From NCBI GenBank assembly GCA_950097015.1, contig CATNEN010000037.1:4402001-4466000 (forward strand): a stretch of 64,000 nt of DNA, read 5' to 3'. Below the pieces are notes generated by a model that saw nothing but the letters and a program-made list of their open reading frames with translations, made no database searches and was not told where the DNA came from. The stretch comes from Macrostomum hystrix (lineage: Eukaryota; Animalia; Platyhelminthes). Positions 21,126-53,086 of this stretch are shown one piece after another. The position numbers and the translations under genes were made by a program. Position 1 is the stretch's first letter, and the number at the start of each line of letters is the position of its first letter.

Positions 21126-21772
21126 TTTTATTGCTGAGGGGATAGTATTCACTTGTACCTCAGTAGCATTATTACTGACGAAATGAGTTTTCGTTTTTGT
21201 TTGCTTTTAGGTGTGTTTTGTCCTTCTGCATTGCACAAGATTTTTTTGTCTGACCAGTATAGTGCTCCCCGAAGGGGGGCAAAACAGGCTAGTTAATATA
21301 CTAAAAATAAAAATCTTGCTTGCTTGCTTGTAATTTATTATACTAAAGATATACAAAACACATATTCACCAAGAGCTGTAAGAGTTCCATCCTTTAATTA
21401 TTTATTAGGCTGCCATTCGAAAAATATTTGCGTTTTGTAAAATATATGCAGGACCTGTGGGATCTTTGATCGAAAGAAGTTGAACTTTTGAGTTTGAGTT
21501 TGAGTTTGAGTTAGAGTTGGAGTTTGAGGCTTTGAGTGGACTGTCGTTAAATTCTCATTTTCGTGCATTTTTTCAACTTTGCCTTTTTCTTAGAAACAAA
21601 GTTGTTTCAGTTAATTATATTACTTTATTAGTTTTGATCCATCTTAAAATTATTTTTTTTGTCTTAAAGCGTGCCATTTAAATTTTTGTCTTGCTTTTTA
21701 CTATCTTCACCAAAGATTAAGTGTAAGGAAGTTGATAAATAAGAAGCGAGCTGAAGTCAGCGACAAATAACT

Positions 21773-24700
21773 ATGTCCTTCTTAAAAAAGCCTTTATCCA
21801 GCTGTTTTGCTTCACTTCATGTTACTGGCGATTCCGCAAGATATAACTATAAAGGTGATGCTTTCTTTAATCAATCTTGCTTCCTTATATACCGGTGCGT
21901 TGTTGCACTTTTTTATTTTTCATTCTAACTTATTTTAATTGTATTTTAAGTCCAGAGCAAGGAGGCGGCAGGAATGACCAGAACGAGATGGGAGCAAAAG
22001 TGATTAAGGCATGCATATTTTAAGTAAATATTTTACCGAAACAATAATGCGAAGCAGAAGTTTAAGACAGCATAGAGAAAATTTTAGAGTAGTTGTGAGT
22101 GGCAACACCCTCTCACTAAGAGGTTGGGTTAGCAATAATAGTAGTTTTAATAAAAGTTAAAGTATAGGATATATTATGTACATTCCCAATATTTTTCCCT
22201 TACTTGCACTGATGTATCAGGTAACACCCATAAACTTTTATTGTTCATTTTTATTTAGGTAGGTAGGTTGTCTCAGTCAAACAGCCTGTTTTGGCAATAT
22301 TATTTCATGTTTTTTGGGTGAATTAAGAAAATGAATGTTCAAAAGTATAAATTATTATGATAGTTTTAAATTGGTACAAAATGGAAAAAAGCAAGTGATA
22401 TTTAGCATTTAATAAACACAAAAAGTTGGATATTTTTATTCACTGAATACATAACTATAGGAAATCAAAGAAAAGCTAGAGAGGAAAAATTAAATCAAAG
22501 CAATCTCAGTAGTGATAATGAAGCAGTTAACAAAGCTTATTATTTGGCTACTGATCACAAGGTGGTCAAATCAATAGTAAGTAAGTTAAAAAATGAGTAA
22601 GTTAAAAGGTTGAGTAACCCAAGAGCTCATAAAAATGATTTTGAGAATATATATATATGATAGTTAAATAACTAGGCTATAAATATCAATATTGTTCATT
22701 TTTCACACAATTAAATTTTTCTAATAAGTCATCATTTTTTCTAAAAATCTAAAGTGAATCACAGATCATGATACAGACAATAATGTCTTTGCCCCAAAAA
22801 CCCTGATGTACAGTCATTCTGATGTATTTCCAAAACAAACACTTTTTGAAATATATCAACAGTTTAAAACATTCAAACTTGTATAATTGTAGTGCAGGAT
22901 AGTGTTTTTTTCTATTTTTTTCATTGAACTGTGACTTGTTGATGAGTTATATGATCCTATATCCAACCAGTATATATATTTCCAGATATTGTTTAGCTAT
23001 AAGAATAAGCTCAGTGCCAGTTGATACTGTGTATTAGCAGTGTTGGGCAACCTTCCGGCACTTTTTGTGCCGGAAGTTACTGTTTTTTAAAGCGGCACTT
23101 TTTTCCGGTTCTTTTTTTTGTAGTGCCGGACTAGGGTATCGGAAGTTACTTTTTGTTAAGTCCGGTACTTCCGGCACTTTTTTAAATGCAGAGAAAAAAA
23201 AGAGAAAGAAAGTAAAGAAAACATACAAATTGAAAGAATTTTCATATCATCAGTTCATAATGTCGTAAGAAATGCCGAGAAATTTCGAAATTTATTTAGT
23301 TGGTGAATTTTAACAACTTTTTGGTTCTTTAAAAAATTAAATGTTTAATTCGAGCAAAGCGAGCACCTCTTGCCGACGCGACACTAAACCGCCTTGTACT
23401 ACTTCGCGGCAACAGGCATTTGATGTGAATTGTGACAACATGACTGTCTATATCTAGCTTTTACACTAGTGCTAAAGCTTTCAAGTTTAAATTACGGGGG
23501 TTCCTTTTAAGAAGCATGCAAACTTTTTTTCTCAGCTGTTAACCTAGGCTAAATTGTCTAAATGTCAAAGTAGTTTTTTCAGGGCTTAAAAGGTTATTGA
23601 ATTAATAAAGGTAATTATCAGCAGGGCAGCAGCGCCACTAGAGCTACTCTTTCCACCTTTTTAGAGTTGTCACTTTATGTCATTAGTTTGTAAGACTCTT
23701 GTGTTGTTAGTTATTCAGTGGTGTGATTGAGGCGCGAATATGCGATTTCTGAGGGCAGGCTCGAATTATCGTCAAACAGAGGCGCGATTTTTCAATTTTC
23801 GAATTTTCATTTTTTACTGATCACGTTTAGTCTATTTGCGCACGCTTTATTCAAATTTAAACTTAATGTAATGTTACGGTGTAAAATACATGCAAATCTA
23901 ATTTTTTTTCAGCTTTTTTAGTTGCGCAGGCCAAACTTTTGAGTGGTAATTGGTAAAGTTCTGCCACAGCAAGGATTGAACCTTAGTGCTGGAAAAAGAA
24001 GCAAAAACCATAAAAATATAGGTTTTCAGAAATTAATTTTTCGTTTTCAATAATTTCATTTAATCATTTTCCACTTGGTTTTACTCTAGACAAGTTGGCA
24101 GTTGCAAAGGCATGTTATTATTGGTTTTTTAATAATAAAAACATAATTAAGCCCTTCTTTAACACGCGATTTTTCAAAAGTAGAAAGTACCGGTGCCGAA
24201 GAACCGGAAGTTACTTTTATTTTCGAGTGCCGGTACCGGAACTACTACCGGAAGTTACTTTCTTTAGAACCGGAAGTTACTTGACCGGAAGTTACTTTTT
24301 TAAAGTAACTTGCCCAACACTGTGTATTAGATAAATGGTTGAATTATTTGAAATGCAGTTTTCAAGTTGAAAAATGAAAAATGTGTGAGATTTCAATATT
24401 GTAAAATTATGCAAATTGTTAAAGTGAAATTTTTTGTGCAACTGTATACTTAAAATCCTTAAGTACCTTTGAATTTGACGACTGTTTCAATAATTCTACT
24501 TGGCAGTGATTACCCTAGTATCAACAACAACATTTTAGATTTTGAATGGAGTGTAATGCGACTTTCATTAGAGAAGATACTTCCTGTTCATTCTGGCTGT
24601 GTAAGTTGTTTTTTTACTAATTGTATTTTTTGCTATAAGAGTTTTGTTCATTATATTACTTTTTGCAGGTAAACACAGTGTGTTGGAGTTCAAATGGGCG

Positions 24701-27700
24701 CTATCTGCTATCTGGTTCCGATGATCGTAATATTGCTATAACTTCACCATTCTGCCATTCAGTAAGAGCCATTCATTGAATGAATTCATTCAAACAATTC
24801 ATCTGAATTCCTTAAAATCTTACTTTTACTGCTTATGATCGCCTTTTTACAATCCCTTTCTTTGGTTCACAGTAAACAGAAAGACCAACCAGCCACGACC
24901 ACCCACCTTACCACACGCACACAAAGCACACCCAACAATGACCGACCACCCCATCAAGGCCTACCTCTCACTAACTCCGGTTAGTGCTTACCAAGGTCGC
25001 AAAACTGAGCTAATATGCTAAACTGCGCTTCACCTTTTGCCGAAACTTTTAAAGCATTTTTCGACTTTTAAAAAACTTAGATGCCTACCTAAAGTAGAGT
25101 TTAATGCGTATTAACCAAAAAAATTAATTCGTGCTTACTTATAGGGTGAATCCCATTCGATCGCCTCCGGCCACCGGGCTAATATATTCAGCGCCAAGTT
25201 TCTGCCCCACTCGGACGATTTAAAAATTGTCACCGCCGCCGGCGATGGTCGGATTAACCTGACGGACCTCGGCCAAGCCTGCAACGATGGCGGCAACGTC
25301 CGCTGCTACGCTTGTCATCGAGCCACCGTGTTCGACATTGTCACTAGCCAGTCAGAGGCCAGCTTGTTCTTTAGCGTCAGCGCTGATGGCACGCTTCGGC
25401 AGTTTGATGTGCGCCAGCCCGACTCTGGTCACGTCGTGTTATTGACCAATCAGCACTGCCGGTGAGATTAAATATGCTTGTGAGCCTCTGCGCTTGATGC
25501 CTGATGCTCTGCTCCTGAAGCCTGATACTCTGCTCCTGATGCCTGATGCTCTGCTCCTGAAGCCTGATGCTCTGCTCCTGAAGCCTAATGCTCTGCTCCT
25601 GAAGCCTGATGCTCTGCTCCTGAAGCCTGATGCTCTGCTCCTGAAGCCTGATGCTCTGCTCCTGAAGCCTGATACTCTGCTCCTGAAGCCTGATGCTCTG
25701 CCCCTGAAGCCTGATACTCTGCTCCTGAAGCCTGATGCTCTGTTCTTAATGCCTAATGTTCTTTTCTTGATGCCTAATGTTCTGTTCTGTTCTGCTACGT
25801 GCCTGACGCTCTGCGCTTGATGCATGATGCTCTGATGTACTTGTGCTTAACACCTGATCTTGGACTTTAGATCAGGTCTAAAGATCAAAATAAGATCTTA
25901 CAGCTCTGAGGCTCTGTTTTTGATGCATTATTCTAAAGAGTACTCATCCTTCAACATCGCGCGCAGGTACTACGGCTACACAGCGGCCGTGATTCATCCG
26001 TTGGCTAGGGAGCGCTTATTTGTAGCTGATAAGGACGGATACATTGGCGAATATGATCGCCGTTGCATCGGCTACGGCCGCTGGATCAGCCAATCCAAGC
26101 CTGTGGAGGTGCTCAGCTCCAAGCGCCTGGTGCGCGTCACCAGCCTCAGCTTCGATCCCAGCGCCAGCCAGCTGCTGGCTTCCTATAATGGCGGCAGCCT
26201 CTACCTGTTCGACATCAGTCGGACAGTGCCGCACTCGCAGCTGACCGCCGCGCCAAATGCCGGCTACGATCCTCTGAACGGCGGTCCGCTGGCTCCGGAG
26301 GCTGCCGCAGCGGCTTCCGCTGAGGACTCCAGCGGTCGCATTGTGTTTCGCTTCCGCGGCGACTGGTCGGACACAGGCCCAGGATCCGAGCCGCCGTCTT
26401 CGTCTGCTGGCCGCGGCGCCGGCTCTGGCGACTATAGCGAGCGCCTTGGCCAGTTCATGATGCGCGCCTACCAGCTGAATCGGCAGCGCAATCCGGCACC
26501 GGCGGCGCAGGCTCCGCTGGACCAAGAAGGTCCGAATCCGAGACCGCTAGAGGAGCCGTTGGCGGCGACAGCGGATGCCGAGGACAGCGTTGAGCTGCTA
26601 GAAGTTCGTCAGGAACGTCGATCTGAGCCTCCGACGCCGAGATCATTCGAGCAGGCGCCGGTTGGTGTTCATCGGCCACAGATGGAACTCGACGATAATC
26701 GCGAAGCCGTGGCGCCGACTCCGTCGGTTGACATCGTCGCAGACGACTCTGACAAGCCGCCGCAGCCCGGACACCTGACCGACAGCGGCTCCCAGGCTGA
26801 AGCCGCCTCCGACTATCCAAGCTACCCGGTGTGCCGGGTGTTCCAGGGTCACCGCAACGCTCGCACCTGTATTCAACAGGTACTCTACGTGTAGTTAAAC
26901 TGCATTTCGAGGGTATTTTAATGCGAGTCATTGCGGGTCTCATGACTTAATTAAGATTCGTGGAGTTCCATTTAGATAAACTATCTGTCTAACTCATGAC
27001 TTCTAATGAGTCTGAATTTTTACATCTAGGTCCGAGGATAGCAATCAACCATTAGCATTAGTTCGCTGATTTTAAATGATCAGCCAATTATGGTTAAAAA
27101 GTGATGTGATTTCTCATTTACGATTTATTTATATATCATAGCAGTATTCATTGTTTTAGAATCTGCAACGAGTCTGGGGGTTGTAGCCAAGTGGTTTAGG
27201 TCGTCGGACTCACGACTACTGGAACAATTTGTGTCCTTTCGCAAGACACTTAACTCTGAATTGTTTTACTTTCACCAAACTGTTAAATAGGTACCAGCAT
27301 TAGCTGTAGTAATTGAATGTTGCTTGATGCCCCCAGTCCATTCGGCAGCTGTACATGATCCTGAACAGCTGTACGCAGCCTTGAGTAAGTGTGACCCGAT
27401 TGGGGTTGGTGTGATTAAAAAGATGTACTGTGTGATGTTTGCAGGACTCTTCTGCACTTATAGTAGCTTTTTGGGTATAATGAAACTCTACAGTAGTCTT
27501 GACTTGACTTGGCTGCTGGGTGCATCGGCCCAAGCGAAGAGCAGCGGAGAGACCCTGACAACCTCCCTCTCTCTGCAGTTTTAGTTAAGCCGCATCGCAT
27601 TGACTTTACAGGCCGCATTCTGGGGCTCCAGCTACGTCATCTCAGGCAGCGACTGTGGCCACTTTCTAGTTTGGCGCGCCAGCGACGGTCGCCTATTGAA

Positions 27701-27977
27701 CGCCTGCCTGGCCGATCAGCGGGTTGTGAATCGGGTTGCGCCGCATCCCAGCCTGCTGTACCTGGCGACTAGCGGCATTGACTACGATGTGAAGCTCTGG
27801 TCACCGATAGCCGGCGGTGAGCAGTCGCTGACGTCGGCTAATTCGGATCTGGCGCGCCTGGTCCGGCGCAATCAGGAGATGCTGGCGCAGACTATGAACA
27901 CGGTGACTGTGCCTGGCAGTGCGATGCTGTCAATCATGCGTACTCTATCTAGGCTGTACTCGCGCGACGCTCAATGA
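21773..27977 (+). CDS. DCAF6: DDB1- and CUL4-associated factor 6-like WD40 protein. Exons 21773-21854 (less certain), 24539-24600, 24669-24761, 25145-25461, 25967-26879, 27612-27977
   Basis: RLSLEKILPVHSGC|VNTVCWSSNGRYLLSGSDD, SGHRANIFSAKFLP, GHRNARTCIQQ|AAFWGSSYVISGSDCGH..ADQRVVNRVAPHP..LATSGIDYDVKLWSP match the recalled DCAF6 motifs. Junctions are GT-AG and in phase. Confidence 0.88.
23038..24322. mobile_element. Non-autonomous hAT-type TIR element in DCAF6 intron 1
   Basis: TIR CAGTGTTGGGCAA / TTGCCCAACACTG, perfect 8-bp TSD TGTATTAG, subterminal CCGGAAGTTACT repeats at both ends. Confidence 0.9.
25485..25835. repeat. 21-bp minisatellite (GCCTGATGCTCTGCTCCTGAA) in DCAF6 intron
   Basis: Tandem repeats. 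Confidence 0.95.
27176..27500 (+). mobile_element. tRNA-derived SINE family B (CORE-like), B box deleted
   Basis: GGTTGTAGCCAAGTGGTT A box, then CTGGAACAATTTGTGTCCTTTCGCAAGACACTTAAC shared with the copy at 42124; resembles the CORE-SINE GTGTCCTTGGGCAAGACACTT motif. Confidence 0.65.
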
Positions 27978-29855
27978 GAGTTTGAGTCACAGCTTTTTTT
28001 CACACTAGCTGCTTGCTTTTACTTGTCGTTTTTATTGACCATCGTGCTAATTTATTGTGATTTTTGGCTTATCGCATATTGTACACAACGGAACAGATGG
28101 AGTCAGATAATATTCAAGTAGTTTATATGCTAAATTTGCATCATTTAAAAATTGCAAGATTTTTTTCGTCAATAAAGGGTTGCAATTTTGAAATTTAGAA
28201 AATCTGATGAAGATAAAAAAATACTTTTAAAGAACCCCACCTAAGCACGTGACTCACGGCCGAAATCCACAGAGTTAGTTTGGTTCCTCGCTCCATCATT
28301 TTCCCATAAAGTACTTAGATACTGCTAAGGCGTGTCTACTTTTGAAAGCGGCTTTTTTAATGATCCTTACTATATAGCTTGCAATATAATATATTGTTTA
28401 ACCTTGTTTGTAACCTCGATGTAAAAAATAGTTGTAGTTTGTCTTTCCAAATCGATCAAATATCGAACATTGTATTTTTTGTTTCAAACTATTTTTCTTG
28501 TTTTTCTACCCATTTAATTTTTATTTTATTTTAGATATTGTATCAGCCATGATGAGCATAAAATTTTCATTCACTTCACTGTTTCTGTTTTTAAAACATC
28601 TATTTACCTATCATTGATTCAAATTTCATTTAATTTGATAAAAGTGGAACAGTTTGCGCCAATAAAACTAATATATCGACACATCTCCCAGAATTTTTCT
28701 TCTCTCTTTGTACTTTTGGCTAACGTCAAAGAAATAAACAGCTGCTCTCGCAATTTCATTGCGCAGTGTTTGTTTGTTTGTTAGAACAGTGTCCTGTTCT
28801 AAGCTTATAGTATATCTCAATTTGAACTATCCAATGCTAATATAGCTTGTGTGTGCGTAATTCTTGTTATCTTTAGTTGGAACGTGCGCATAGAGAGGTA
28901 GCATACAGAATTAGTTACCAGGCACAATTGCGCATTCACTATTTAAGGAGAAATTAAAAAAAATTTGTGAGTAAAAACAAACTTCTACTTAGAGGATAGT
29001 AAGTAGGAAAGGAGGTTGAAAGTAAGCTGCAAGTGTCAATTCAGTGCTAATAACAGCGAATTTCAAGCATAATTTACACGGTTCACTTCAAGCATTTAAG
29101 CAAAAAAAGTATTTCTTTCTGCTACTGATGCGCAAAGAACTCAAAGCGGCTTTACTGAAATGAAATAAAAAATAAATATAATTTATTTGATAACAATAAT
29201 TTTCTATGGTGCATTCAATTTTAACTATAATACAAGAAACACACGACGACTAAATATATGTAAAGTCATAGTTATTGTTATTGGCCCTATGAGCCCCATG
29301 AGAAGCTCCAGACAATGACTCCGTATGTGTTGATGACGGCTTAGCACAGGCGGCTTGAAATAAGGCCTAAGAAATACTAAATCCTTTTGCCGTATAGTTG
29401 CTCCCTTATATTTCGTAATTTCTATCTTCGATCTGTAGTTTTAGGCTGAAAATAAAACTTGCATGTAACTTTGATGTTATTAGGGCCTATGGTAAATTTA
29501 ATGCTAGTGCTAGGGGCCTACCTGTAGCTGTAGGCCTAGCATTTATAGCAAAATTTACATTTCAGCAAATATTTCTTTACTGGAAACTATATTTTACATT
29601 AAATTCTATATATTTATATGTCCAATTGGCATTCTTCAGTTTCATGTGTTTGCCAAAATATTTAGAATAAAAAATATAATTTAAGGTTATTATTTTACCA
29701 ACCACCAATCACCATGGTTGTGCCCCACAATGTAGAGAAAGGTGCAGAACTTTTCTATGGGAAGTGGTGGTGCCATCCATTTTTGTTCATGTCTCTTAAA
29801 CAAGGAATCAGAAAGGTTGGTTGAGGTTCATTTGGTTGTTGCCACTTCCTCTGGG

Positions 29856-30411
29856 CCATAGTCCGGATCATGCTGGACTTACGCCGGAGGAAAAATCCAA
29901 CATTTTTTGGCACTTACGCCAGACTTACGCCAACCAAAAAAGGTCCCTCTGACTTATGCCACCCAAGAAAGGTCCTTCACAATTCTTGTTAATTGGTGAT
30001 TATAATTAAATTCAGAAGTTGCAACTGTTTAAAAATCTCACAAGTTGCAAATTCTGAATCAAGTATCAAAGTAAGCATCTTAAAGCTAAAAAACTTTTGC
30101 TATCCTACAATAGATATTCTGCTATCTCATTTATACGAACTGCAATATTTTATTGAACTTAGTTTTAATGCTGCTCCTTAACATCATAATTAACGCAAAT
30201 GTGTTATGTTCTATAGTGATACATTTGATCGTGAATGATCTCATTTGTGCTAACATTTACGCCACTTGATTTATGCCATGTACTTACGCCAAGCACTTAC
30301 GCCAAGGCACATTTTGGCCTATACTTACGCCAAGCACTTACGCCAGCCTCCGATCCCAAACCAGATTTACGCCGGAGATCTCCGGTGTAAACGACATGAT
30401 CCGGACTATGG
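29856..30411. mobile_element. MITE with 17-bp TIR and 8-bp TSD (superfamily unassigned)
   Basis: CCATAGTCCGGATCATG / CATGATCCGGACTATGG, TSD CCTCTGGG, ~11 internal [C/T]TTA[C/T]GCC motifs. Confidence 0.85.
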
Positions 30412-32036
30412 CCTCTGGGCTCTGGCACATAATTGTCTATTATAACTAATTTCAAGTTGTTTTGCCAATCAAATTTTTTATTCTCGTGTTTTGACGTGTA
30501 TGTATCTTAGTTTAATTTAAGGCATTTGTTATTTGTCTGGTTAACTAGACAAATAGACATTTTGTTATTTGTCTGGTTAGATGGACAAATAGCCATATTG
30601 ATTATTCATCTTGCCATGATGCCTAGGCCTATGTACTGCTAGTGTGAGAATAGAAGATCATCTGATTTTTTAGTTCCTTGACTAATTAGGGCCTCTTAGC
30701 CTCATGGCCTACTTGAAAAGAATAGCACCTTCCCCAAACCAGATTTTCACAAGCTTCCCAGGCATGCACATATTTAAAGACAAGTTATAGCAGGCAATAT
30801 GGCAACAGACAAAAAGACTGGAAACCTGGTTAACCAGACAAATAACATATTTGAAACTTTTTCCAGTTTATTGCAACTTGTAACCAGTAGTCTCTTGACA
30901 TTATGTACAGATTTTTGTTACAATAATAAAATTCTTCATTTTATGCTATATTAAATGTAGTATTGTGAATGTAAATGGACCAATACTACTAAAAATGCAG
31001 TTTTTTAATAATTTTTATCATTTTTCAAAAATAAATAGAACTCTAGATCTGTTCATCTAATATTTAGCTTTTCTTACATTTTAATTCTAAAATCCATTGC
31101 CATTTGATTTTACTCTCTGTAAGAAAAAGTCATGTTGTCTGCCTGTAAATTGGACCCATATCAGAAAAACTAGTCAGTAAACAAAATTACTGTGCAGATG
31201 CAGTTGCATTTTCAAGCCAACAGGTTTTTAAAAAAATCAAAAATTGAAATTTGTTGTTAACTGACTATATATTTTAATATGTTTACAAAGAGAGAAAAAT
31301 ATAAAACAAAGCAGTCAATAAGAGGCACATATATGTTACCTAAGGGAATTAGTTTGTTTAAAACAAAAAAAATTGCACTACTATATAATTTTCACTGTGT
31401 ATATTGTTGAGTGCTTTATTCAAGTTTACATGTTTACCTATTAATCTGGGGTATAACAGTTTGAGCAATTGTTTGGGAGCTTGCATAAGCTTGTGTTTTT
31501 TTAGTCCCAGTGTTAGTCAATGTGTGCTGCAAAATTGGTCAGTATGCACCAGAATTTTCCAACCAAACTGCCACCTTCCTGACTATGGGTATCACACTTC
31601 TCCATCACTCAAACGTTCACAATCAAGTTTGGGTGGCTGTGATGCATTTAAATAAACTGGATTAATAAAAAATAGGATCTTTTTTGTTCCTTGATTAGCT
31701 ATAAAGCGAATAAAATATGTTAATGTATGCTATTGTAGTGCCTTATGTATATTAGATAAATATATATCTGATGTATATAGCCTTAACAGTCTTTTTTTTC
31801 TAATGCTCTTACTTTCCAGAACTTTTCATTGTACATAATTCCTGTATTGTTGGAATAAGGGCTAGGAAATGCAATCCTAAAGTTCATTGACCCTAGTTTG
31901 AATCTTTGATTTAGCAACAATTTTATGAACTAGTTTTAGAACAATAATTGAGTCTTTTCTAAGACAAATTTATTTTTAAAAGATAAAGCAATGACTGACT
32001 TGCAATTGCAGCTGAGGCATCTAAGTTACAGTAGAA

Positions 32037-41630: not shown

Positions 41631-44558
41631 ATGGGCACACAGAATGGCGAAATTAAGAAGGCCCAGCAGCAGCAGGCCACCGTTGCCACCGCCGCCAAGG
41701 CCGCCAACGAGGACGTTGAAATGGCCGACGACGAGGCGACGCGTGCCGACGCCGACACGCTCACGCTCGAGGACATCAAAGAGCAGGTGCGCCACATTGA
41801 GAAGGCGGTCCAGACCAAGGAGACGCGCTTCATGACCCGTACCGTTCGCTCGCTGGTGCCGCTGCGGCGTCGCCTGAACGAGGCTGTCCTACTGCGCCTG
41901 GCCCAGGCCTATTTTCCCGGCGTGTCGCCTAGCAAGGACGCATTCCTGGCCTTCCTATCCGCTGCCAGCTCCGGTTCCGGTGAGGCCCTCTTGTTGATTT
42001 AGCTCCGATGTGTCGAAAATTGCGTTAATTCACAACAAATTTTAATCCAGCAAAATTTGTTACTCATTAACCTGAAGATTGATAGAAATTACATCTAGCA
42101 TATTTGAACCTACGTCTAAGCACTTGGTGGTTGTAGCTTTGTGGTTAGAGCGTCTGACTCGCGTCTTGAAGGCCGGAGGTTCGATTCCCGACTCCACTGG
42201 AACAATTTGTGTCCTTTAGCAAGATACTTTCTTCAGTTCACCCAACTGTTAATTGGGTTAATAGAAGATTTGCGTTTTTGCCTTCAGGTCCCAGCGGACA
42301 GGCCTCCCGCCGCCTGCTACCCGAGACGGAAGTGTTTCTCCACCTGCTGCTACTGCTTCACCTGCTGGACTCCAATCGTCAGGCTGAAGCCGTTCGCTGC
42401 TCCCAGTTGCTATGGCAACGCACCGGCCAGTTCAACCGGCGCACCCTAGACATGCTGACAGCCAGGGCCTATTTCTACTTTGCTAGATCGCACGAATTGG
42501 CCGGCCAGTTGTCCACAGTGCGGCCCCAGATGCTGCAGCGGCTGCGCACCTGCACCCTGCGCCAGGACTGGCACGGCTGCGCCACGCTCACCAACTGCCT
42601 GCTCCGCTCCTACCTCATGGACCGACTGTTGGATCAGGCTGCTCGCCTAGTTGACAAGTGCGCCTTTCCCGAGCTGGCGCCTAATCACGAACTGGCCAGG
42701 TATCATTTCTACCTGGGCAGGATTAGGGCCGCCCAGTTGCAGTACAGCGGTGCCGCTCAGCACCTGCAGCAGGCTCTGCGTAAGGCCGCCAGCGGTCAGC
42801 GCGCGCTTGGATTCCGCCAGATCTGCTACAAACTGCAGGTTAGACTGTTTATTTTTATTTTGCTAGCGGCTAACTGCCTTCATCGATATAGATTAAACCT
42901 ATATCGAATCCATATTGGTTAAAAAATAATTTTATATTGTCGATACAATATTGTCACTAATAGCAGCAGTCCTTTAGTACATTAGTGGTTTTTGCCACCA
43001 GACACCCTGACAATAATCGTTGTGATTCAGGAAGTTGTTTCATCAAATTTAGCGTAAAATTTTAGCCCGTGTTCTGTATTTTCACGTTGATTGGTTGATT
43101 ATTTTGGGGCAATACAGAAAAATGTAGGTTGACTGTTGCACAGAATATTTCTTCTGGGCTGAGATTCGAACTCCCGACCGTTGGGCTACGCGCTCACTGA
43201 GTCACCTTCTAATCTGTGTTAACTGGCTCCATCTGGGTCACTCCAAGTTCCTTGAGTCTCTAAAAGTCCTTTATAAGTGTCAACCCTAGACTATTAAGTT
43301 TTTCCTCCCAAATTCTAACAGGTGGTGGTGCAGCTGCTCATTGGCGAGACCCCAGACCGGCAGGCCTTCCGCGAGCCGGGCCTTCGTCGTCCGCTGGCTC
43401 CCTACCTGCGCCTGACTCAGGCCGTCCGCTCCGGACGCCTAGCCGAGTACAATGCTGTACTGCGGGACAATGCCGCCAGATTCAAAGCCGACGACACCTG
43501 GCTATTGTGCGTCCGACTGCGTCACAATGTCATCAAGGTCGGTGTCCGTCAGGTTGCCCTGTCCTATAGCCGAATCTCCCTGGCCGCTGTGGCCGCCAAG
43601 CTGCAGTTGGACTCGGCCGAGGAAGCCGAATATGTGGCCGCCAAGGCTATTCTAGATGGCGTCATTGAGGCCACCATCGATCACAAGGCTGGCACTTTGA
43701 GCAGCCGTGAGACTGCCGACCTGTACGGCACCCCCGAGCCGGCTGATCAGTTTCAGCAGCGCATCAACTTCTGTCTGCAGGTAGGCGTCTTTCGTGTGTT
43801 TTTTTATTTCATAATAATATGTTTTAAAATCTGCTTAACAGTAGGACTACAGAGCCATTTTTCGCCCGTTGGGTGGTGACTGATAGTTTGACAGACTAGA
43901 CGATGGTGTACTGTGGTTGAGCTGCGCCTAATACTTAGGCTTGATCAGTGAAACAGGAGAAATTCGCGTCAGGGTGTCCATAGTGGACTAGTTCCACCTT
44001 TTGTAGCCCTTGAAGGTCCAGCAGACCGTCTAGATAAATGATGATGCGGGCACATTCGGGTGACATGCTGATCAATTTTGAAGGCCTGTTTCAGAAGATG
44101 CGCAACAAAAAGTTGGCTCGTGTTCTTGAGTTTTGTGTGCTTGCATTGCTCCGTTCGGGTGCAGCACAAAACTAATCAGGGGAGAATTCCCCCCTTGGTA
44201 GTCTACTGTTATACTGTTGAAATACATCTTCACTGCGTTGCCATGGCAACCAATCTAAAGCAACAGTCAAAATCATTCATGTTGTGTTACCATGGCATCC
44301 AATTTCAAATCGTTGTCAAAATATTATTTATATAACCGCCTCACATTTTCAATGCCCATGTTTTGGATTATGTTGCCATGGCAACTGCCTACTCTCTCCC
44401 ATGTGTTCCAGGTCCGCGAACAGTCGGTGCGCGCAATGCGCTACCCGCCTAAGAAGTACACGGAGGATTTGGAGAGCGCCGAGGAGCGTCGCGAGAGGGA
44501 AGCGGCCGAGTTGGAAACTGCCAAGGAGATGAGCGAGGATGACTATGACGACTTTTAA
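41631..44558 (+). CDS. PSMD3: 26S proteasome regulatory subunit Rpn3. Exons 41631-41979, 42288-42838, 43322-43780, 44412-44558
   Basis: [96 protein letters not shown]. Junctions in phase. Confidence 0.96.
42124..42262 (+). mobile_element. tRNA-derived SINE family B (CORE-like) in PSMD3 intron 1
   Basis: A box TAGCTTTGTGG, B box GGTTCGATTCC, then TGTGTCCTTTAGCAAGATACTT; homologous to the 27176 copy. Confidence 0.75.
43140..43205 (-). mobile_element. tRNA-like SINE head fragment
   Basis: Minus strand GACTCAGTGAGCGCGTAGCCCAACGGTCGGGAGTTCGAATCTC contains a B box; no convincing cloverleaf. Confidence 0.4.
44237..44385. promoter_or_regulatory. Cluster of three RFX X-box motifs in the last PSMD3 intron
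   Basis: Perfect palindrome GTTGCCATGGCAAC at 44237-44250 and 44372-44385; near match GTTACCATGGCATC at 44286-44299. Confidence 0.6.
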
Positions 44559-45313
44559 GCTAGCAAAGATGTTGACACTGGCCTCTATAACCGGTTTCTG
44601 GCTAAGCTTTGTATCCAACCCCAAATCTTAACCAGTGAATGACCGTTTGCTTGTCTCTGTGCCTGTCGGTTCTCCTGTTTCTCCCTTCCCTTGGCTAGTA
44701 GTGAAAAGCGCTGTTGCATGGCGGTATTTTAGCGCGCACAAGAAAAGTACATTTAACTAAAATATTGACAAAATGGGTGGCTTTGATATATTATTCCGCT
44801 TTTCAGTGCATTCTACTAATAATATTATAACTAATGATTATATAATCAAATAACCTATTAATGCTATTTAAGTTGTCTTATCTCTAGTTTAATACTGTGA
44901 AAATCATCCCCCTACTCAATATAACAAAATACGCAGTGTCCCACCCGTTAAACACTGAACGGCAATTTTATTTTCTATTATTAGTTTACATACCTGTTAT
45001 TGCAGCACTATTTCCTAAATACTATCAACCTTAGGCAGAAAAAAGCTTTCTCCGCACATCAGCAGTGTTAAATATAAAACTGTCCTACAAAATCCTATTT
45101 ATTGTTTCAAGAAAGGGTAGTCCTATATAATAGACTGCGAGTTCTAATTTATTTTTTTATTTGGGTCTGAATGTTTGAATTCTAAGAAGTGATTTTGGTT
45201 CGCAAATACAAAAAATTAAAACAAATTGCTACATCGGTTTTTCAGCTCTAGCACATCTTAAAAGGCACAGCTTCATTTTTGAACTGCAAATCAATTTTTA
45301 ATAGAAAGTCAGC

Positions 45314-47821
45314 ATGGACGACCAGCAGATTAATCTGCGCTGCGTGCTCACCTCATCCAAGGAGGGCGTACCGCTGCGCCTGCTGATGTCGGATTATCGC
45401 CAGCTGGCCTCTTGCGAGCTCAATCTGCATGGCTATCCAAGCCTGCTGTCCTACCTGCGGAGCATACCGGAGGTTGTGCGGCTGTCCAACGCTGGCGGCG
45501 AGGTCATCTGCCACGGCGTCGCCTCCGAGCGCAGCTCGCACATTGAACAGCTGATTGCCCGACAGAGGACAGCTAAAAAGAAGCGTTCGGGTGCCTCAAG
45601 AGGCGGCCGTGGCCGCGGTCGCATCTCCCGTGGCTCCTCAGCGTTTGCGCCGCGCGGTGCTCGAGGAGCCGCTTCGTCTATCAGCAGCTCCTCCGGCTTG
45701 TCGTCACCCTCAGCGTCGACTATCCGCGGCCGCGGCGGCCCGGTCAGGGCGCCGTACCGTGGCGGCGTTGTTAGCAGCCGACGGCCGCTGCAGGAGCAGC
45801 AGTTGTACACGCCGCCCAGCATGCGCTCTAGCTTGGGCCGAGGCGGCAGCGGATCTGCTGGCACCGGCTTTAGCAGCCGTGGCAACAATTCCAATGGCCG
45901 AGGAGGCGGGGATTCGAACGCCCTGTTGCCTCATCCAGTCAATGGGCGCCAGTCTGTGCCAGCAGCGTATCAGAGACCGGCTCACAGATCTCAACTATCC
46001 ACAATGCCAATACCGTCGCCGCCCTCACCGCCACTTAAGAATCGACAACAGCCGGAATCGTCCGTTACATCTGGCCTCTCCAAAACTGATTACCATCGGG
46101 TGCAGAATCTTACAATTTCTACGCAGCAACACCAGCAGCAGCAGCAGCAGACCCAGTCGACTCGGCCGCAGAGTACATACTCGTCTTCGTTTTCCAGTTC
46201 AGTTCTTTGCTCCGATCAGCTGCTGGCCGCTGCTCGCAGCCTGATCCAGCCGCGCGGCAGTGAGCGGTCCTATTTTTGGCGCCAGGCAGCCAAGCGGTCC
46301 GGGGTAGCCCCACCTGCCCAATTCGACGCGCTGGAAGCCAGCCTGCTGGCCGAGGGTGTGCTGCGTGTTGAAGACATCCTTGGCCGCCTAATGTACTATC
46401 CGGCGGCTTCGGCGGCTGTAGATTCGCCAGTTCTAAGCGTCCCGACAACGCCCAAGGCGCCATCGATTCCTACTGCACCTACTTCGATGGCGGCGACTCC
46501 GACTACAAGTTCTGCTTCCGCTGCGGAAGTGGACGAATGGGGATTTGAAGTTGGCGCCAGTGGCGACAACCTCGGCGAGGCGTACGGCGACGATCTATTA
46601 GAGGACGATCTGTCTGAGACTGCCTACGACGGCGAGATCGAAGGCGATGATGAAGATGATGACGAGAGCGACACTCTATTAAACGTTGCCGACCTGACAG
46701 TGGGGAATCAGTTCACTTCACTCTGCTTCGGCTCAGATGAGAGTGAAGATGGCGTGTGGGTCTACACTCTGAGCAGTCAGCTCGAGGCGCAGCTTGAGCA
46801 GGTGATGAAAGAGGCCAGCGCTCTGGTTAACCATCTACGTCGCGAACTGCCGCCTTTATTTGCCCAGTACTGCATGGCCACAATGCCAGTGGAGATCCTT
46901 GGACAGCCGGTGCTGCTCATTTGTCAGGAGGACAGCAACGAGCTGCTGCGATGCCGCTTGGCTTCCGATGTCCTCAGCGAAGCTGTTGTCAAGGTCAGAC
47001 TTAAAAGATTCAGTTCCTGTCCTGCAATCAGAGTGTGAGATTCAGTTCCTGTCCTGCAATCAGTGTGTGAGATTCAGTTCCTGTCCTGCAATCAGAGTGT
47101 GAGATTCAGTTCCTGTCCTGCAATCAGTGTGTGAGATTCAGTTCCTGTCCTGCAATCAGAGTGTGAGGCCACGTTAATTTAAGGCGCAGTCGCAGAGACA
47201 AGGCTTGGGGGCTTGTCGTGTAATTTACGCCCTTGAGGGCCAACCTCCAAGGCATAGTGAGAGTGTACATTGCCTGACGATGAGAAAGTCAGACGTACAC
47301 ACCTGTGTGCGTGTATGCTCAGGAGTCAGCGGAATGGGCAGAACTGCCTCCTCGCTGGCTGCGGGTCTAGTGTCACCAAATGGTGTGCCATTGCCCGCAG
47401 CCCTCCTGCAAATATTCTTATCAAATTATTAGGGTGTGAGATTCGGTTCCTGTGATCAGAGTGTGAGATCCTGTCATCAGTGTGTGAGATCCTGTCCATC
47501 AGTGTGTGAGATCCTGCCATCCCACAGATTCAACTGTTGGACAAGTGCTGCGCTCCCATGGACGTCCCAATGACCCGCCTACGCCGACTGTCGGTTGAGC
47601 TAATCTCCGAGCTGCTGTCAAAGCGGCACGGCCCTCGGTGGGCTCTGATTGGCCAGCTGGCCAGCCAATGTCTAGCCTGCCTGACCAGCCTGCCGGACGC
47701 TGCAATTCGCTTCGCCTGTCAGAATCCGCCGCCGAAGTCGCTGTTCGCCAACGGTCCCGAGCTGATGGGCTTCCAGGTTGAGTCTACAGCCCCGGAGTTG
47801 GCGGTGCGCTGGCTCAAATAG
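45314..47821 (+). CDS. LOTUS/OST-HTH + RGG + degenerate extended-Tudor protein (Tejas/TDRD5/TDRD7-like). Exons 45314-46993, 47528-47821
   Basis: N-terminus LRCVLTSSKEGVPLRLLMSDYRQL..GYPSLLSYLRSIPEVVRL..GEVICHGVASERSSHIEQLIARQR closely resembles the TDRD7 eLOTUS. C-terminus VWVYTL..LEQVMKE..GQPVLL..LLRCRL..VVK|IQLLDK..VPMTRLRRL follows eTudor spacing. Confidence 0.75.
46995..47518. repeat. 32-bp minisatellite (AGATTCAGTTCCTGTCCTGCAATCAGAGTGTG) interrupted by a SINE
   Basis: Units at ~47005-47167 and degenerate units at 47435-47518. Confidence 0.88.
47168..47432 (+). mobile_element. SINE family A, 5'-truncated copy
   Basis: High similarity to the reverse complement of 51201-51500. Confidence 0.8.
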
Positions 47822-48399: not shown

Positions 48400-49575
48400 T
48401 CAATCACATATTATTCTAGTTAGGATTAAGGATCACATAACATTCTAGTTAGGATTTAGGATCACATAACATTCTAGTTAGGATTTAGGATCACATAACA
48501 TTCTAGTTGGGATTTGGGATCACAAAACATTCTAGTTACGATTTGGGATCACAAAAAATTCTAGTTACGATTTGGGATCACATAACATTCTAGTTGGGAT
48601 TTGGGATCACAAAAAATTCTATCCAGGATTTAGGATCACTTAATATTCTAGTTAGGATTAAGGATCACATAGTATTCTAATTGGGATTCGGGATCACATA
48701 ACATTCTAAATTGGGATTTGGGATCACATAACATTCTATTTGGGATTAAGGATCACATAGTATTCTAATTGGGATTCGGGATCACATAACATTCTAAATT
48801 GGGATTTGGGTTCACATAACATTCTATTTAGGATTGAGGATCACATAGTATTCTAATTGGGATTCGGGATCACATAACATTCTATTTAGGATTAAGGATC
48901 ACATAGTATTCTAATTGGGATTCGGGATCACATAACATTCTATTTAGGATTCGGGATCACATAACATTCTAAATTGGGATTTGGGATCACATAACATTCT
49001 ATTTAGGATTAAGGATCACATAGTATTCTAATTGGGATTCGGGATCACATAACATTCTATTTAGGATTCGGGATCACATAACATTCTATTTAGGATTCGG
49101 GATCACATAACATTCTAAATTGGGATTTGGGATCACATAACATTCTATTTAGGATTAAGGATCACATAGTATTCTAATTGGGATTCGGGATCACATAACA
49201 TTCTAAATTGGGATTTGGGATCACATAACATTCTATTTAGGATTGAGGATCACATAGTATTCTAATTGGGATTCGGGATCACATAACATTCTATTTAGGA
49301 TTAAGGATCACATAACATTCTAATTGGGATTTGGGATCACATAACATTCTATTTTGGATTAAGGATCACATAGTATTCTAATTGGGATTCGGGATCACAT
49401 AACATTCTATTTAGGATTAAGGATCACATAAAATTCTAATTGGGATTCGGGATCACATAATATTCTTTTTAGGATTAAGGATCACATAACATTCTAATTG
49501 GGATTTGGGATCACAAAACATTCTATTTAGGATTTAGGATCACTTAATATTCTAGTTTGGAATTGGGATCACATC
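48400..49575. repeat. ~28-29-bp minisatellite (GGATCACATAACATTCTAGTTAGGATTT) in the intergenic spacer
   Basis: Tandem repeats. Confidence 0.95.
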
Positions 49576-49652
49576 GGATTTTAGATGTCCCAGCTTTTGT
49601 CAATCAGCAGTCTGTTTCTTTGCAGAGCAGCCAATTGATTAACTAAGCGGAA

Positions 49653-52600
49653 ATGCGTGTCTCAAGACTTGCTACCTGGATGGCTAGCTGGCCCATGGAA
49701 CTAAAGATTTTGTTAATCACCGTGCTGTTTAACGAATTGCTCATCTACTATTATTATTCGTGGGCCTGGTGGTGGAAAATCAGAAGCACTTGGTGAGTTC
49801 CAGCTTTTTTACTTTGAGTTATAGATAAACCTTCACTTGACTCAGACCATGCTGACTGATACTTTAGTGGCAAAGGAATCGTCCCGAATAATCCTCTACT
49901 CTATGTCGATTCTTTGTGTAGGAATCGTCCCAAACCATCCACTAGTCTGGGTTGATTTTTGTAGGAATCGTCCCAAACCATTCTCTAGTCTTTGTGAATT
50001 TTTTGTAGGAATCGTCTTAAACATTCTCTAGTCTTTGTGGATTTTTTTGTAGGAATCGTCCCAAACCATTCTCTAGTCTTTGTGAATTTTTTGTAGGAAT
50101 CGTCTTAAACATTCTCTAGTCTTTGTGGATTTTTTTGTAGGAATCGTCCCAAACCATTCTCTAGTCTTTGTGAATTTTTTTGTAGGAATCGTCCCAAACT
50201 ATTCTCTAGTCTGGGTTGATTTTTTGTAGGAATCGTCCCAAACTATTCTCTAGTCTGGGTTGATTTTTTGTAGGAATCGTCCCAAACTATTCTCTAGTCT
50301 GGGTTGATTTTTGTAGGAATCGTCCCAAACTATTCTCTAGTCTGGGTTGATTTTTGTAGGAATCGTCCCAAACTATTCTCTAGTCTGGGTTGATTTTTTG
50401 TAGGAATCGTCCCAAACTATTCTCTAGTCTGGGTTGATTTTTTGTAGGAATCGTCCCAAACCATTCTCTAGTCTGGGTTGGTTTTTTGTAGGAATCGTCC
50501 CAAACCACTCACTACTCTGGGTTGATTCTGTGCAATCTTTCTAAGTAATCTTCTTATTTCATACACAGCGGCTCGGGCCAGGGCTACACCACCTTTCTGA
50601 TCGCATCAGATCCTCAAATTCAGGGCTACCGTGACGAGAGCCAGCTATTTGGTTGGATCACCAGGTGGGACGCAGACAGGTAAGTAACTAGATTGACCCT
50701 GTTGATTGTCGTCAAATCATTGCTTCAACTGCTCGCCTGTTCCCAACCTGAGCTCAGATTTCTCTACAAAGGCTACTCAGCCGCTCTGGCAGCGGTCAAG
50801 CCATCGACGCTGCTCTTCCCCGGCGACCTCATCGATGAGGGCCTATCGGCGTCGCCTGCTGACTTGGACGACTACATGGCCCGTTTCCGCGGCCTGTTCC
50901 TCTGGCCCCGTCTGCGCCGCCTCGTTCTGGCCGGAGACAACGACGTCGGGGGCGAAGCCGAACCGGTCAGCGACGGCCGGGTGACCGCCTACGAGAGCGC
51001 CTTCGGCCGCTTGGAGGGCGCCGCCAAGGCTGGCCAACGCCTGCGGCTCGCCTGGCTGCGTTTCTATCCGGATGCGTTCGGCAGCGAGCGGGACATTGCC
51101 AGTCACGTGACCACCGCCTATGCACATCTGGCGCCAAGTGAGTGAGGCCAAACAGATGCATCATTGGATGGATCGTGACTCCAATTTCCAATAGGGGCGT
51201 TAATAATAATAACTGCAGGAGGGCTGCGGGCAATGGCACATCATTTGGTGACACTAGACCCGCAGCCAGCGAGGAGGCAATTCTGCCCATTCCGCTGACT
51301 CCTGAGCACACACGCACACAGATACTGTACGCACACGCTCACACAGGTGTGTACATCTGCCCTTTCTGATCTGTTCCCAGATATGTTTATCTCTCATCAT
51401 CAGGCAATGTACACTCTCACTGTGCCTTGGAGGTTGGCCCTTATGGGCGTAAATTGCACGACAAGCCTCCAAGCCTTCTCTCGGTGGCTGCGCCTCAAAT
51501 AAATGTGACCTCGCAGCGGAATCGAGCTCAGGGTCATTGATTGGTGCGAGAGGCAAACGCGTTAACCGCTCTGCCACCGACCCCCTTTCGCGTTTCACAA
51601 ACCCGAATTTTCACAACGTCGCGTAGTTCGTAATACGCAATTCGACGCGAAATGTCGACGTTATGAAATTACGAGCTTATGAAATTTATGAAATTATGAA
51701 ATCCTCAGACACCCCGGAGACTGGCTCGGCTAGTTATCGAATCCTGACCAACCACGCCAACCTGCTAACTCAGCGGCCAACCCAGTTTCGTCACCTGCTG
51801 CGCCTGCTGCGGCCCCATCTGGCCATCACCGGTCACAGGCACCGGGCGTTCGCTCTCCGCTGCGATGGTTGCTGGTCTGCCGCCGGCCCAGAGACCGTAG
51901 CGCCGTTTCCCGACCACAGCGGAGGCCCCTACGCCAGGGAGCCGCTGGACTCGGCTAAATTCACCCTGCGAGACGGTGTGCTGTACGAGATCGGCTCGCC
52001 CACCTGCTCTTACCGTATGGGCACCACTGAAGTGGCCTACGGCTACCTGGCTATTAGAGAGACTGACGGCCAAGTGTGCTACGTCACACTCTGGCTTGTG
52101 TCTAGGTGCGTGAAAATCTATATGGGCGAATATTTGTGTTGTTCTGCATTGGCATACCTCTCTACTCATCCTTTCCCCATCTTTACTCATCCTGCCCCCA
52201 TCTTTACTCATCCTGCGCCACTTCCCTACTCATCCTGCCCCACATCCCTACTCATCCTGTCCCACCTCCCTACTCATCCTGCCCCCCATCCCTACTCATC
52301 CTTCCCCACATCCCTACTCATCCTGCTCCCCATCCCTACTCATCCTGTCCCACACCTTTACTCCTCCTGTCCCACCTCCCTACTCATCCTGCCCCCCATC
52401 CCTACTCATCCTGTCCCACCTCCCTACTCATCCTGTCCCACCTCCCTACTCATCCTACCCCCCATCCCTACTCATCCTTCCCCACATCCCTACTCATCCT
52501 GTACCACATCCCTACTCATCCTGCTCCCCATCCCTACTCATCCTGTCCCACACCTTTACTCCTCCTGCGCCACATCCCTACTCATCCTGCCCCACATCCC

Positions 52601-53086
52601 TACTCATCCTGCCCCCATCTTTACTCATCCTTCGCCACTTCCCTACTCATCCTGTCCCACATCCCTACTCATCCTGCCCCCATCCCTACTCATCCTGCCC
52701 CCCATCCCTACTCATCCTGTCCCACATCCCTACTCATCCTGCCCCCCATCCCTACTCATCCTGTCCCACATCCCTACTCATCCTGCCCCCCATCCCTACT
52801 CATCCTGTCCCACATCCCTACTCATCCTGCCCCCCATCCCTACTCATCCTGTCCCACATCCCTACTCATCCAATCCAATGTTCCTACTAATCAAGTATCA
52901 TTGTGCCGCTACTTGTCCTCCACCTATGGCAGGTTCTACTGGCTTGGCCTGTACTGCCTGTCGCTGCTGCTTTGTGCCGGCCTCTGGTTAGTTCGTAGAG
53001 TGCGCCAATGCAGCGAGGCCGACGCTGGCAATGACTTCAGGCCAACTGGCGGCTCGCTTCGTCGGCAGGGACGTTTCGCGGTTTGA
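49653..53086 (+). CDS. MPPE1: MPPE1/Cdc1-family metallophosphoesterase. Exons 49653-49792, 50569-50679, 50758-51137, 51709-52105, 52933-53086
   Basis: N-terminal TM (LFNELLIYYY), IASDPQIQG, WDADR|FL, PGDLIDEG, AGDND, AITGHRH, PTCSYRMG, LWLVSR|FYWLGLY C-terminal TM. Junctions in phase. Exact paralog uncertain. Confidence 0.85.
49880..50525. repeat. ~41-42-bp minisatellite in MPPE1 intron 1
   Basis: TTTTGTAGGAATCGTCCCAAACTATTCTCTAGTCTGGGTTGA tandem units. Confidence 0.94.
51201..51585 (-). mobile_element. SINE family A, apparently full length (~385 bp)
   Basis: Minus strand GGGGGTCGGTGGCAGAGCGG (A box), GCTCGATTCC (B box-like), family body, (TTA)n tail. Confidence 0.82.
52150..52872. repeat. 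~21-bp C-rich minisatellite (CACATCCCTACTCATCCTGTC) in MPPE1 intron 4
   Basis: Tandem repeats. Confidence 0.95.

Follow-up and report, generated by a model that had tools for sequence, protein, structure and literature searches.

Two candidate polycistronic units in a run of eight co-oriented genes of Macrostomum hystrix

In the genus Macrostomum, a single 45-nt spliced leader is added to the transcripts of about 20-30% of genes, with conserved housekeeping genes trans-spliced more often than any other class. M. cliftonense and M. hystrix have the same published leader as M. lignano, in which about 15% of genes are classed as operon genes. For the operons of M. lignano, a spacer mode of about 100 bp has been reported, 18% of operons start with a non-trans-spliced gene, and the published criterion for an operon is a repeat-adjusted intergenic distance of <1 kb (PMC8629364).

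In the genome of M. hystrix, the exact M. lignano leader is present in 23 copies, and intact SL RNA genes with a GTAAG donor, three stem-loops and an Sm-like site were found, which indicates that the trans-splicing machinery is present; leader trans-splicing itself has been published for the genus. The genome also contains a second, 5S-linked class of SL RNA genes.

Gene content of the run

When the window (a stretch of 64,000 nucleotides of M. hystrix contig CATNEN010000037.1) was re-read, eight co-oriented plus-strand genes were confirmed at the positions given in the initial annotation, with all eight AGs and ATGs in agreement. The eight genes are real, but the Tudor half of the proposed "LOTUS-Tudor" identity was matched by no HMM. 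The features are as follows.

21714..21715, plus strand: AG claimed as the DCAF6 acceptor; reads CCAAAG, outside the trans-splice motif
21773..27977, plus strand: WD40/DCAF6-like gene, ATG to TGA; Pfam WD40 on two exons
27978..32031, plus strand: spacer 1, DCAF6 to COX7A-1, 4054 bp; multicopy MITE and TIR-like fragments
32026..32402, plus strand: COX7A-like copy 1 (COX7A-1); TTACAG acceptor ending at 32031, single-exon CDS 32037-32402, 121 aa
33079..33339, plus strand: COX7A-like copy 2 (COX7A-2); TTCCAG acceptor ending at 33084, CDS 33097-33339, 80 aa
33956..34970, plus strand: ZRANB2; TTTCAG acceptor ending at 33961, single-exon CDS 34026-34970
35468..37273, plus strand: LMBR1L; TTGCAG acceptor ending at 35473, CDS 35485-37273 in two exons
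37274..41559, plus strand: spacer 5, LMBR1L to PSMD3, 4286 bp; MITE and two 33-bp arrays
41554..44558, plus strand: PSMD3 (Rpn3); TTTCAG acceptor ending at 41559, CDS 41631-44558
45240..47821, plus strand: LOTUS-domain (TDRD5/7-like) gene; TTTCAG acceptor ending at 45245, CDS from 45314
48403..49574, no strand assigned: 29-bp minisatellite of about 40 copies, 1172 bp of the LOTUS to MPPE1 spacer
49620..53086, plus strand: MPPE1-like metallophosphoesterase; TTGCAG acceptor ending at 49625, ATG at 49653

All eight genes share the plus strand, uninterrupted by any gene of the other strand; the minus-strand ORFs in the spacers are repeat-derived only, and no tRNA or Rfam RNA was found inside the run. 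The upstream neighbour, DUSP, is on the minus strand.

Multi-exon genes were searched exon by exon in profile and protein searches. In the DCAF6-like gene, a GT..AG pair bounding a 2.7-kb intron links exon 1 (21773-21854) to exon 2 (24539-24601) with the reading frame kept. Pfam and PDB gave no match for the COX7A-like ORFs, the MPPE1 exons or a Tudor domain. Both COX7A-like ORFs have COX7A2/COX7A1 as their ESM Atlas top match (score 0.89, 200/256 shared features), and copy 1 carries a long N-terminal extension; the mature parts of the tandem copies are identical and their N-termini unrelated. ZRANB2 was identified by a Pfam RanBP zinc finger and ZRANB2 top matches in a search otherwise swamped by low-complexity sequences, and a search of representative sequences returned no Macrostomum ZRANB2.

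The PSMD3 protein possesses the domains TPR_PSMD3_N (1.7e-70), PCI and Rpn3_C, and its gene carries TE fragments within introns (42134-42258 and 43867-44211). The LOTUS protein, whose last ORF ends at 47821, has an OST-HTH domain and matches the LOTUS domains of TDRD7 and TDRD5 in PDB (1.5e-8). The MPPE1-like identity is at motif level together with a metallophosphoesterase lead at 0.89; the candidate stop is at 53086 or 52991, and two introns carry minisatellites. The LMBR1L intron (about 36085-36361) also contains one, with a 32-bp unit, and the minisatellites of the window are otherwise mostly intronic.

LMBR1L, recognized by Pfam LMBR1, is 85-90% identical end to end to M. lignano LMBR1L. 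The M. lignano orthologues are Mlig027885g2 and Mlig023685g3, that is, g2 and g3 of transcriptional-unit clusters. This naming no more than hints at multi-gene units, and the gN suffix can also number duplicated copies. LMBR1L alone was recovered when cross-species synteny was sought through M. lignano gene names, and the Mlig ids and gene names are absent from the supplement tables of Macrostomum papers and from a full-text literature search. A genome-wide search for retrocopies or paralogues with a preserved leader-exon junction found none, the returned matches being MITE/TE only.

Splice acceptors, spacers and base skew

The initial annotation placed an AG acceptor shortly before each ATG, several of them reading TTTCAG. 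All eight positions proved right, with TTTCAG at three (33961, 41559 and 45245). Seven of the eight fit the published Macrostomum trans-splice motif [T/C]TNCAG and lie 5-71 nt before the ATG. Since the background of this motif is about 1.2 per kb (in spacer DNA outside arrays and away from acceptor sites), seven of eight motifs within 71 nt of an ATG would be expected by chance at about 1e-7. These seven sites, which precede all seven downstream genes, are most likely spliced-leader acceptors, judging from motif and position.

In the seven genes, no ATG occurs from the acceptor to the start codon; the first ATGs beyond the acceptors lie 13-112 nt further upstream. Of the frames that a leader AUG would open, six close (within ≤8 codons) ahead of the gene's ATG, and that of COX7A-2 is in frame and would add four codons. 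A caveat that had been raised for LMBR1 holds: a leader AUG at the LMBR1L acceptor opens a 76-codon out-of-frame overlapping ORF, which argues against the operon reading.

The AG before the DCAF6-like gene is the weakest acceptor of the eight, and the nearest consensus TTTCAG ends at 21610. Given that 18% of M. lignano operons start non-trans-spliced, a first gene lacking an acceptor would be allowed. However, the absence of a consensus acceptor together with a leader of 327 nt upstream of the ATG that is free of ATGs, of the own-start type, argues against an operon of all eight genes, and DCAF6 probably stands apart, transcribed from a start of its own.

Counted from stop codon to acceptor, the spacers measure 4054, 682, 622, 503, 4286, 687 and 1804 bp in gene order. 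This bears out four short spacers of 0.50-0.69 kb, and the expected contraction of the LOTUS to MPPE1 spacer to about 0.63 kb was likewise reproduced, with 632 bp left after removal of the minisatellite, which ends 51 nt before the MPPE1 acceptor. Five spacers thus pass the <1 kb rule.

The two spacers of about 4 kb had been said to hold MITEs or arrays, and we located such elements in both. Spacer 1 contains a multicopy 556-bp MITE (29856-30411) and TIR-like fragments (30503-30610 and 31511-31594); its segment 27978-29850 is single copy, and at least 2.4 kb is unique overall. Spacer 5 contains a 400-bp MITE (37437-37835) and 33-bp arrays (38627-39380 and 40531-41514), leaving single-copy segments at 37836-38626 and 39381-40530 and 2.15 kb of unique DNA. 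Even with repeats subtracted, both spacers fail the published rule.

The short spacers, at 0.5-0.7 kb, exceed the M. lignano mode of about 100 bp and could house a promoter. As for splice donors, the COX7A-2 acceptor has a GTGAGT 111 nt upstream, at 32974, and the ZRANB2 acceptor a GTAAG 419 nt upstream, at 33542; these would permit cis-spliced leader exons. Consensus donors are numerous in spacer 5, where each minisatellite unit supplies one, and no GT[AG]AG donor is present in the ZRANB2 to LMBR1L, PSMD3 to LOTUS or LOTUS to MPPE1 spacers.

The pooled short spacers show a T>A skew of -0.10 (z about -4.5), equal to or stronger than that in introns of the same genes, and the minus-strand DUSP region has a skew of the opposite sign (+0.10). 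Spacer 5 has T>A skew throughout, its unique parts being uniform at -0.11 to -0.27, as strong as any intron. Within spacer 1, the segment at 28.9-29.4 kb has a positive AT skew and that at 30.4-31.65 kb one of about 0. A T>A skew in spacers is uncalibrated for this genome and would also fit outrons, 3' read-through or 5'UTR introns.

The operon reading and its alternatives

From the genes, acceptors, leader genes and spacers read in the sequence, we infer leader addition at the acceptors and co-transcription. Two polycistronic units of four and three genes, with DCAF6 apart, have in our estimate a probability of about 0.5. Unit A would run COX7A-1, COX7A-2, ZRANB2 and LMBR1L, and unit B would run PSMD3, the LOTUS gene and the MPPE1-like gene. 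In each, a single upstream promoter would yield a shared precursor, the 3' end of each cistron would be formed by cleavage and polyadenylation, and the next cistron would be capped via leader trans-splicing at its [T/C]TNCAG site. The leader genes, the seven acceptors, the leader-AUG frame in seven genes, the five spacers below 1 kb, the lack of GT[AG]AG donors in three of the short spacers, the common strand, the skew and the M. lignano names all favour an operon reading. The "one or two polycistronic units" first proposed can thus be narrowed: two are plausible by the <1 kb rule, and a single eight-gene operon is unlikely because spacers 1 and 5 fail that rule and because of the DCAF6 features.

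It is conceivable, though rather unlikely, that all or most of the genes are trans-spliced but each has its own spacer promoter and a short outron, forming a cluster of monocistronic genes and no operon. About 60% of trans-spliced M. lignano genes lie outside operons, spacers of 0.5-0.7 kb exceed the operon mode several-fold, and a germline-type LOTUS gene is expected to differ from PSMD3 in regulation. A TATATAA box also lies about 115 nt before the LOTUS acceptor, but TATA-like words are frequent in DNA of 33% GC. Such a cluster would moreover have to accommodate five spacers, called consecutive, below the published 1-kb rule, the sense-strand T>A skew across spacers, and a chance of (1/2)^7 for eight co-oriented genes. 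The donors at 32974 and 33542 and the many in spacer 5 raise a different explanation, in which ordinary cis splicing accounts for some or all of the acceptors, their partners being non-coding first exons in the spacers that have gone unrecognised. The cis (CAG) and trans ([T/C]TNCAG) acceptor motifs overlap, and the mostly intronic location of the window's other minisatellites would also suit it. We consider this improbable, since three spacers are free of GT[AG]AG donors, seven of the eight sites have a leader-AUG frame that is either closed or in frame, and conserved housekeeping genes are those most often trans-spliced in Macrostomum.

At the other extreme, one precursor might extend over all eight genes, or over seven from COX7A-1, with the MITE and array spacers transcribed and then discarded. 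The uniform T>A skew in the unique DNA between LMBR1L and PSMD3 fits such a transcript, M. lignano operons reach nine genes, and inflation of operon spacers by repeats is on record (PMC8629364). Nevertheless, the single-copy DNA of the long spacers (at least 2.4 and 2.15 kb) fails the 1-kb rule, the skew in spacer 1 falls to about 0 or becomes positive, and DCAF6 has no acceptor motif, which makes this reading very improbable. A precursor of about 21 kb from COX7A-1 to MPPE1, with its minisatellite and MITE spacers discarded as outrons, is just as improbable. If true, it would rank among the longest operons of flatworms, with a germ-granule LOTUS gene linked to genes of the proteasome and the respiratory chain, and the 5S-linked leader RNA class could serve its downstream cistrons, like nematode SL2.

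Significance and comparison with known systems

If the two-unit reading is confirmed, minisatellites and MITEs can stretch operon spacers several-fold, and one precursor may carry a germline-type LOTUS gene together with housekeeping genes. The tandem COX7A pair is the third special point of the locus, and current understanding is unchanged by any of the three. Being well delimited, the locus is chiefly of use for testing RNA-based operon calls in M. hystrix.

In Schistosoma mansoni and other parasitic flatworms (Protasio et al. 2012, cited in PMC8629364; PMC12582326), the leader ends in AUG, and a minority of genes is trans-spliced, with few in polycistrons, as a point of likeness; the differences are far fewer reported operons and an unrelated leader sequence. 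The operons of C. elegans mix functionally unrelated housekeeping genes in one unit, as the candidate units would, and, as proposed here, their polycistronic precursors are converted into monocistronic mRNAs by 3' end formation and trans-splicing. C. elegans, however, uses a dedicated SL2 for downstream genes and has spacers of about 100 nt, whereas one leader is documented on mRNAs in Macrostomum. Also close are the SL operons of M. lignano (Wudarski et al. 2017, PMC5730564; Ustyantsev & Berezikov 2021, PMC8629364), with which the locus shares the genus, the leader and the [T/C]TNCAG motif, as well as co-oriented conserved housekeeping genes and repeat-inflated spacers. The candidate units, of three to four genes, fall within the M. 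lignano range of 2-9. The differences are the species itself, with an assembly of 220 Mb, spacers of 0.5-0.7 kb in place of the M. lignano mode, and an operon arrangement predicted from sequence. Given that Macrostomum operons are already described genome-wide in M. lignano, the locus is a sound but ordinary candidate of the operon type.

Gene content and borders of the run

Multi-exon genes were searched one exon at a time, and most gene labels of the initial annotation held up in these searches.

Genes, candidate acceptors and MITEs of the region
15668-15600, minus: first exon of a DUSP gene, upstream neighbour of DCAF6, preceded by a TTTCAG acceptor
21773 (ATG) to 21854 and 24539-24601, plus: DCAF6-like exons 1 and 2, WD40 matches on both
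29856-30411: young MITE, 556 bp, copies 95-98% identical
32037-32402, plus: COX7A-1; TTACAG ending at 32031, 5 nt before ATG
33097-33339, plus: COX7A-2; TTCCAG ending at 33084, 12 nt before ATG
ZRANB2, plus, one exon (exon search); TTTCAG ending at 33961, 64 nt before ATG
35485 (ATG) to 37273 (stop), plus: LMBR1L, two exons, 497-aa M. lignano orthologue; TTGCAG ending at 35473, 11 nt before ATG
37437-37835: MITE, 400 bp
PSMD3, plus, TPR_PSMD3_N (1.7e-70), also PCI and Rpn3_C; TTTCAG ending at 41559, 71 nt before ATG
LOTUS protein, plus, residues 1-70 matching TDRD7/TDRD5 LOTUS domains; TTTCAG ending at 45245, 68 nt before ATG
MPPE1-like, plus, GD-IDEG and GH-H motif exons, a metallophosphoesterase lead; TTGCAG ending at 49625, 27 nt before ATG

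The two DCAF6-like exons join in frame across a 2.7-kb intron, and M. lignano LMBR1L aligns with the window gene from residue 1 to the stop. From the earlier label "LOTUS-Tudor" only the LOTUS part was retained, as no Tudor domain was confirmed in the searches. The COX7A-like ORFs had no match in HMM or PDB searches; a language-model atlas ranked COX7A2/COX7A1 first (0.89, 200/256 common features). This pair has in common only the last 215 bp of the CDS (98.6% identical), starting at TCGCAG and ending just beyond the stop, while the N-terminal coding parts (54 vs 13 codons), 5' flanks and 3' flanks are unrelated. Judged from the alignment, this looks like gene conversion that affected the mature-protein part alone, or like partial duplication, with two presequence variants as the outcome.

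Since DUSP lies on the minus strand, DCAF6 is the first gene of the plus-strand run, inside which searches for minus-strand genes, tRNAs and Rfam families found none. The first coding exon of DUSP (15600-15668) has no ATG of its own, and a leader AUG at its acceptor would provide the start codon (M-GDPQSLIITPQSL…). Within the DUSP gene span, an 810-aa ORF (11909-14338, plus) with reverse transcriptase, RNase H and zf-RVT domains marks a non-LTR retrotransposon with 20-bp minisatellites on its flanks.

Spacers and splice acceptors

The recomputed stop-to-acceptor distances were, in order, 4054, 682, 622, 503, 4286, 687 and 1804 bp, in agreement with the earlier lengths, including the reduction of the LOTUS>MPPE1 spacer to 632 bp without its 1172-bp minisatellite. 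When the two spacers of about 4 kb were compared with the whole genome for copy number, the MITEs and arrays proposed there were recovered. DCAF6>COX7A-1 (27978-32031) holds one MITE and two short TIR-like fragments; 27978-29850 is single copy, and at least 2.4 kb is unique overall. LMBR1L>PSMD3 (37274-41559) holds the other MITE with two arrays of one 33-bp unit beside it; 37836-38626 and 39381-40530 are single copy, and 2.15 kb of unique DNA remains. Under the published operon rule, the repeat-adjusted intergenic distance is <1 kb (mode near 100 bp; PMC8629364). Both spacers exceed this, so the run splits into DCAF6, COX7A-1-COX7A-2-ZRANB2-LMBR1L and PSMD3-LOTUS-MPPE1.

The arrays in LMBR1L>PSMD3 (38627-39380 and 40531-41514) leave 1150 bp of single-copy DNA between them, and the second stops 45 nt short of the PSMD3 acceptor. 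Every unit carries an acceptor-like CTTCAG and a donor-like GTGAG, which places about 50 decoy splice-site pairs directly upstream of that acceptor.

The published Macrostomum acceptor motif is [T/C]TNCAG. An AG shortly before the ATG, as first described, was found to end this motif in seven of the eight genes. Background density is about 1.2 per kb in spacer DNA outside arrays (acceptor sites excluded), two short spacers contain no further copy, and seven such motifs within 71 nt of an ATG are expected by chance at about 1e-7. Judged by sequence, we take these seven AGs to be real 3' splice sites. The AG at 21715, also put forward as a trans-splice acceptor for DCAF6, reads CCAAAG, outside the motif; the nearest TTTCAG ends at 21610, and the 327 nt upstream of the ATG are free of ATG, which suits an ordinary untranslated leader.

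No acceptor-to-start interval contains an ATG; further upstream, ATGs return at 13-112 nt from each of the seven acceptors. Because the spliced leader has a terminal AUG, the reading frame opened by that AUG was followed at each of the eight AGs. In six genes this frame closes within 0-8 codons, ahead of the genuine start codon. It is in frame at COX7A-2, where it would add four codons, and at LMBR1L it opens the out-of-frame ORF predicted earlier (76 codons, overlapping). About half of control AGs from the same spacers likewise close within 9 codons, so the leader frame lends weak support (p about 0.07).

Spliced-leader RNA genes in the genome

A search with the 35-nt M. lignano leader (PMC8629364) found 23 exact copies in the window's own 220-Mb assembly, and many more with 1-3 mismatches. 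Those arranged in tandem units of 11.6 kb are genuine SL RNA genes, with GTAAG directly after the leader and U1 adjoining. Their predicted RNA fold has three stem-loops (MFE -35.5, z -3.5); the donor is base-paired within stem I, and AUAUUUUUAG forms an Sm-like site between stems II and III. Leaders published for M. cliftonense and for M. hystrix (45-nt, 43-nt) equal the genome's leader, also in the 5' extension GCCGUAAAGA, which marks the source as a Macrostomum species.

Another class of SL RNA genes was found at G000:C39:12,667,900-12,753,130 (contig C39 of the genome) in about 65 tandem 927-bp units (extracted locus L017:173-292 and 531-649), each combining a gene for 5S rRNA (117.9 bits in Rfam) with an SL RNA gene that has a GTAAG donor, three-stem fold and Sm-like site. 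Compared with the published leader, the one encoded here is altered in the 5' extension (GCCGAAUUCAGU) and close to the 3' end (…GACUCUCUUUUUUGCAUG). It has 69 genome matches, compared with the 23 exact canonical genes of the 45S rDNA units; leader assemblies in the literature contain the canonical leader only.

The full 45-nt leader is also fused directly to unrelated sequence, without GTAAG, in dozens of dispersed copies (extracted loci L002-L004, L018, L019, L039-L055), which represent trans-spliced RNAs copied into DNA. Several of the joined bodies occur repeatedly, one beginning GCTTCAACTCGCTTCGC at no fewer than six sites and another as direct repeats on either side of a 7.2-kb element; they are probably retroelement families with a leader scar.

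Interpretation of the run

The eight-gene plus-strand run was confirmed as an observation. Of the proposed "one or two polycistronic units", two are the more probable; we consider one giant unit very improbable, as unique DNA stays above 1 kb in both long spacers. The reading judged most likely, with a probability of about 0.5, divides the run into a four-gene and a three-gene operon candidate, both of an ordinary Macrostomum type, and leaves DCAF6 apart. That the genes are leader-trans-spliced, each from an independent promoter, is a less likely but credible alternative. It is rather improbable that the acceptors are cis 3' sites joined to cis-spliced leader exons: GT[AG]AG donors were absent from ZRANB2>LMBR1L, PSMD3>LOTUS and LOTUS>MPPE1, where about three were expected (p about 0.05), but GTGAGT lies 111 nt upstream of the COX7A-2 acceptor and GTAAG 419 nt upstream of the ZRANB2 acceptor. 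On this donor pattern, a cis exon is unlikely at LMBR1L, LOTUS and MPPE1 but could exist at COX7A-2 and ZRANB2.

AT skew was A>T on the plus strand over the minus-strand DUSP region (+0.10, z 6.5). It was T>A in introns belonging to plus-strand genes (about -0.05 when pooled), in the five short spacers taken together (-0.10, z about -4.5) and in the unique parts of LMBR1L>PSMD3 (-0.13 to -0.19 at every 500-bp step). In DCAF6>COX7A-1 it was about 0 at 30.4-31.65 kb and positive at 28.9-29.4 kb. This pattern would fit plus-strand transcription over the short spacers and LMBR1L>PSMD3, with a gap in DCAF6>COX7A-1; it serves as a hint only, because skew is uncalibrated for the M. hystrix genome and looks alike for operon spacer, outron, read-through and 5'UTR intron. 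Between DUSP and DCAF6 the sign reverses, at about 17.7 kb, and a divergent promoter serving both genes may lie there.

A genome search for retrocopies of the eight genes, in which a leader junction might survive, found none. In M. lignano, the two LMBR1L proteins are BOX15_Mlig027885g2 and BOX15_Mlig023685g3 (ids not found in supplements of Macrostomum papers), and the gN suffix numbers a gene cut from a transcriptional-unit cluster. The suffixes g2 and g3 hint that other genes precede LMBR1L within its unit and are not decisive, because such clusters also merge near-identical duplicated units. In Macrostomum, 20-30% of genes are trans-spliced, and about 15% of M. lignano genes have been assigned to operons, with 2-9 genes per unit (PMC8629364); an operon resolved by a spliced leader would therefore belong to a kind of system already published in this genus.
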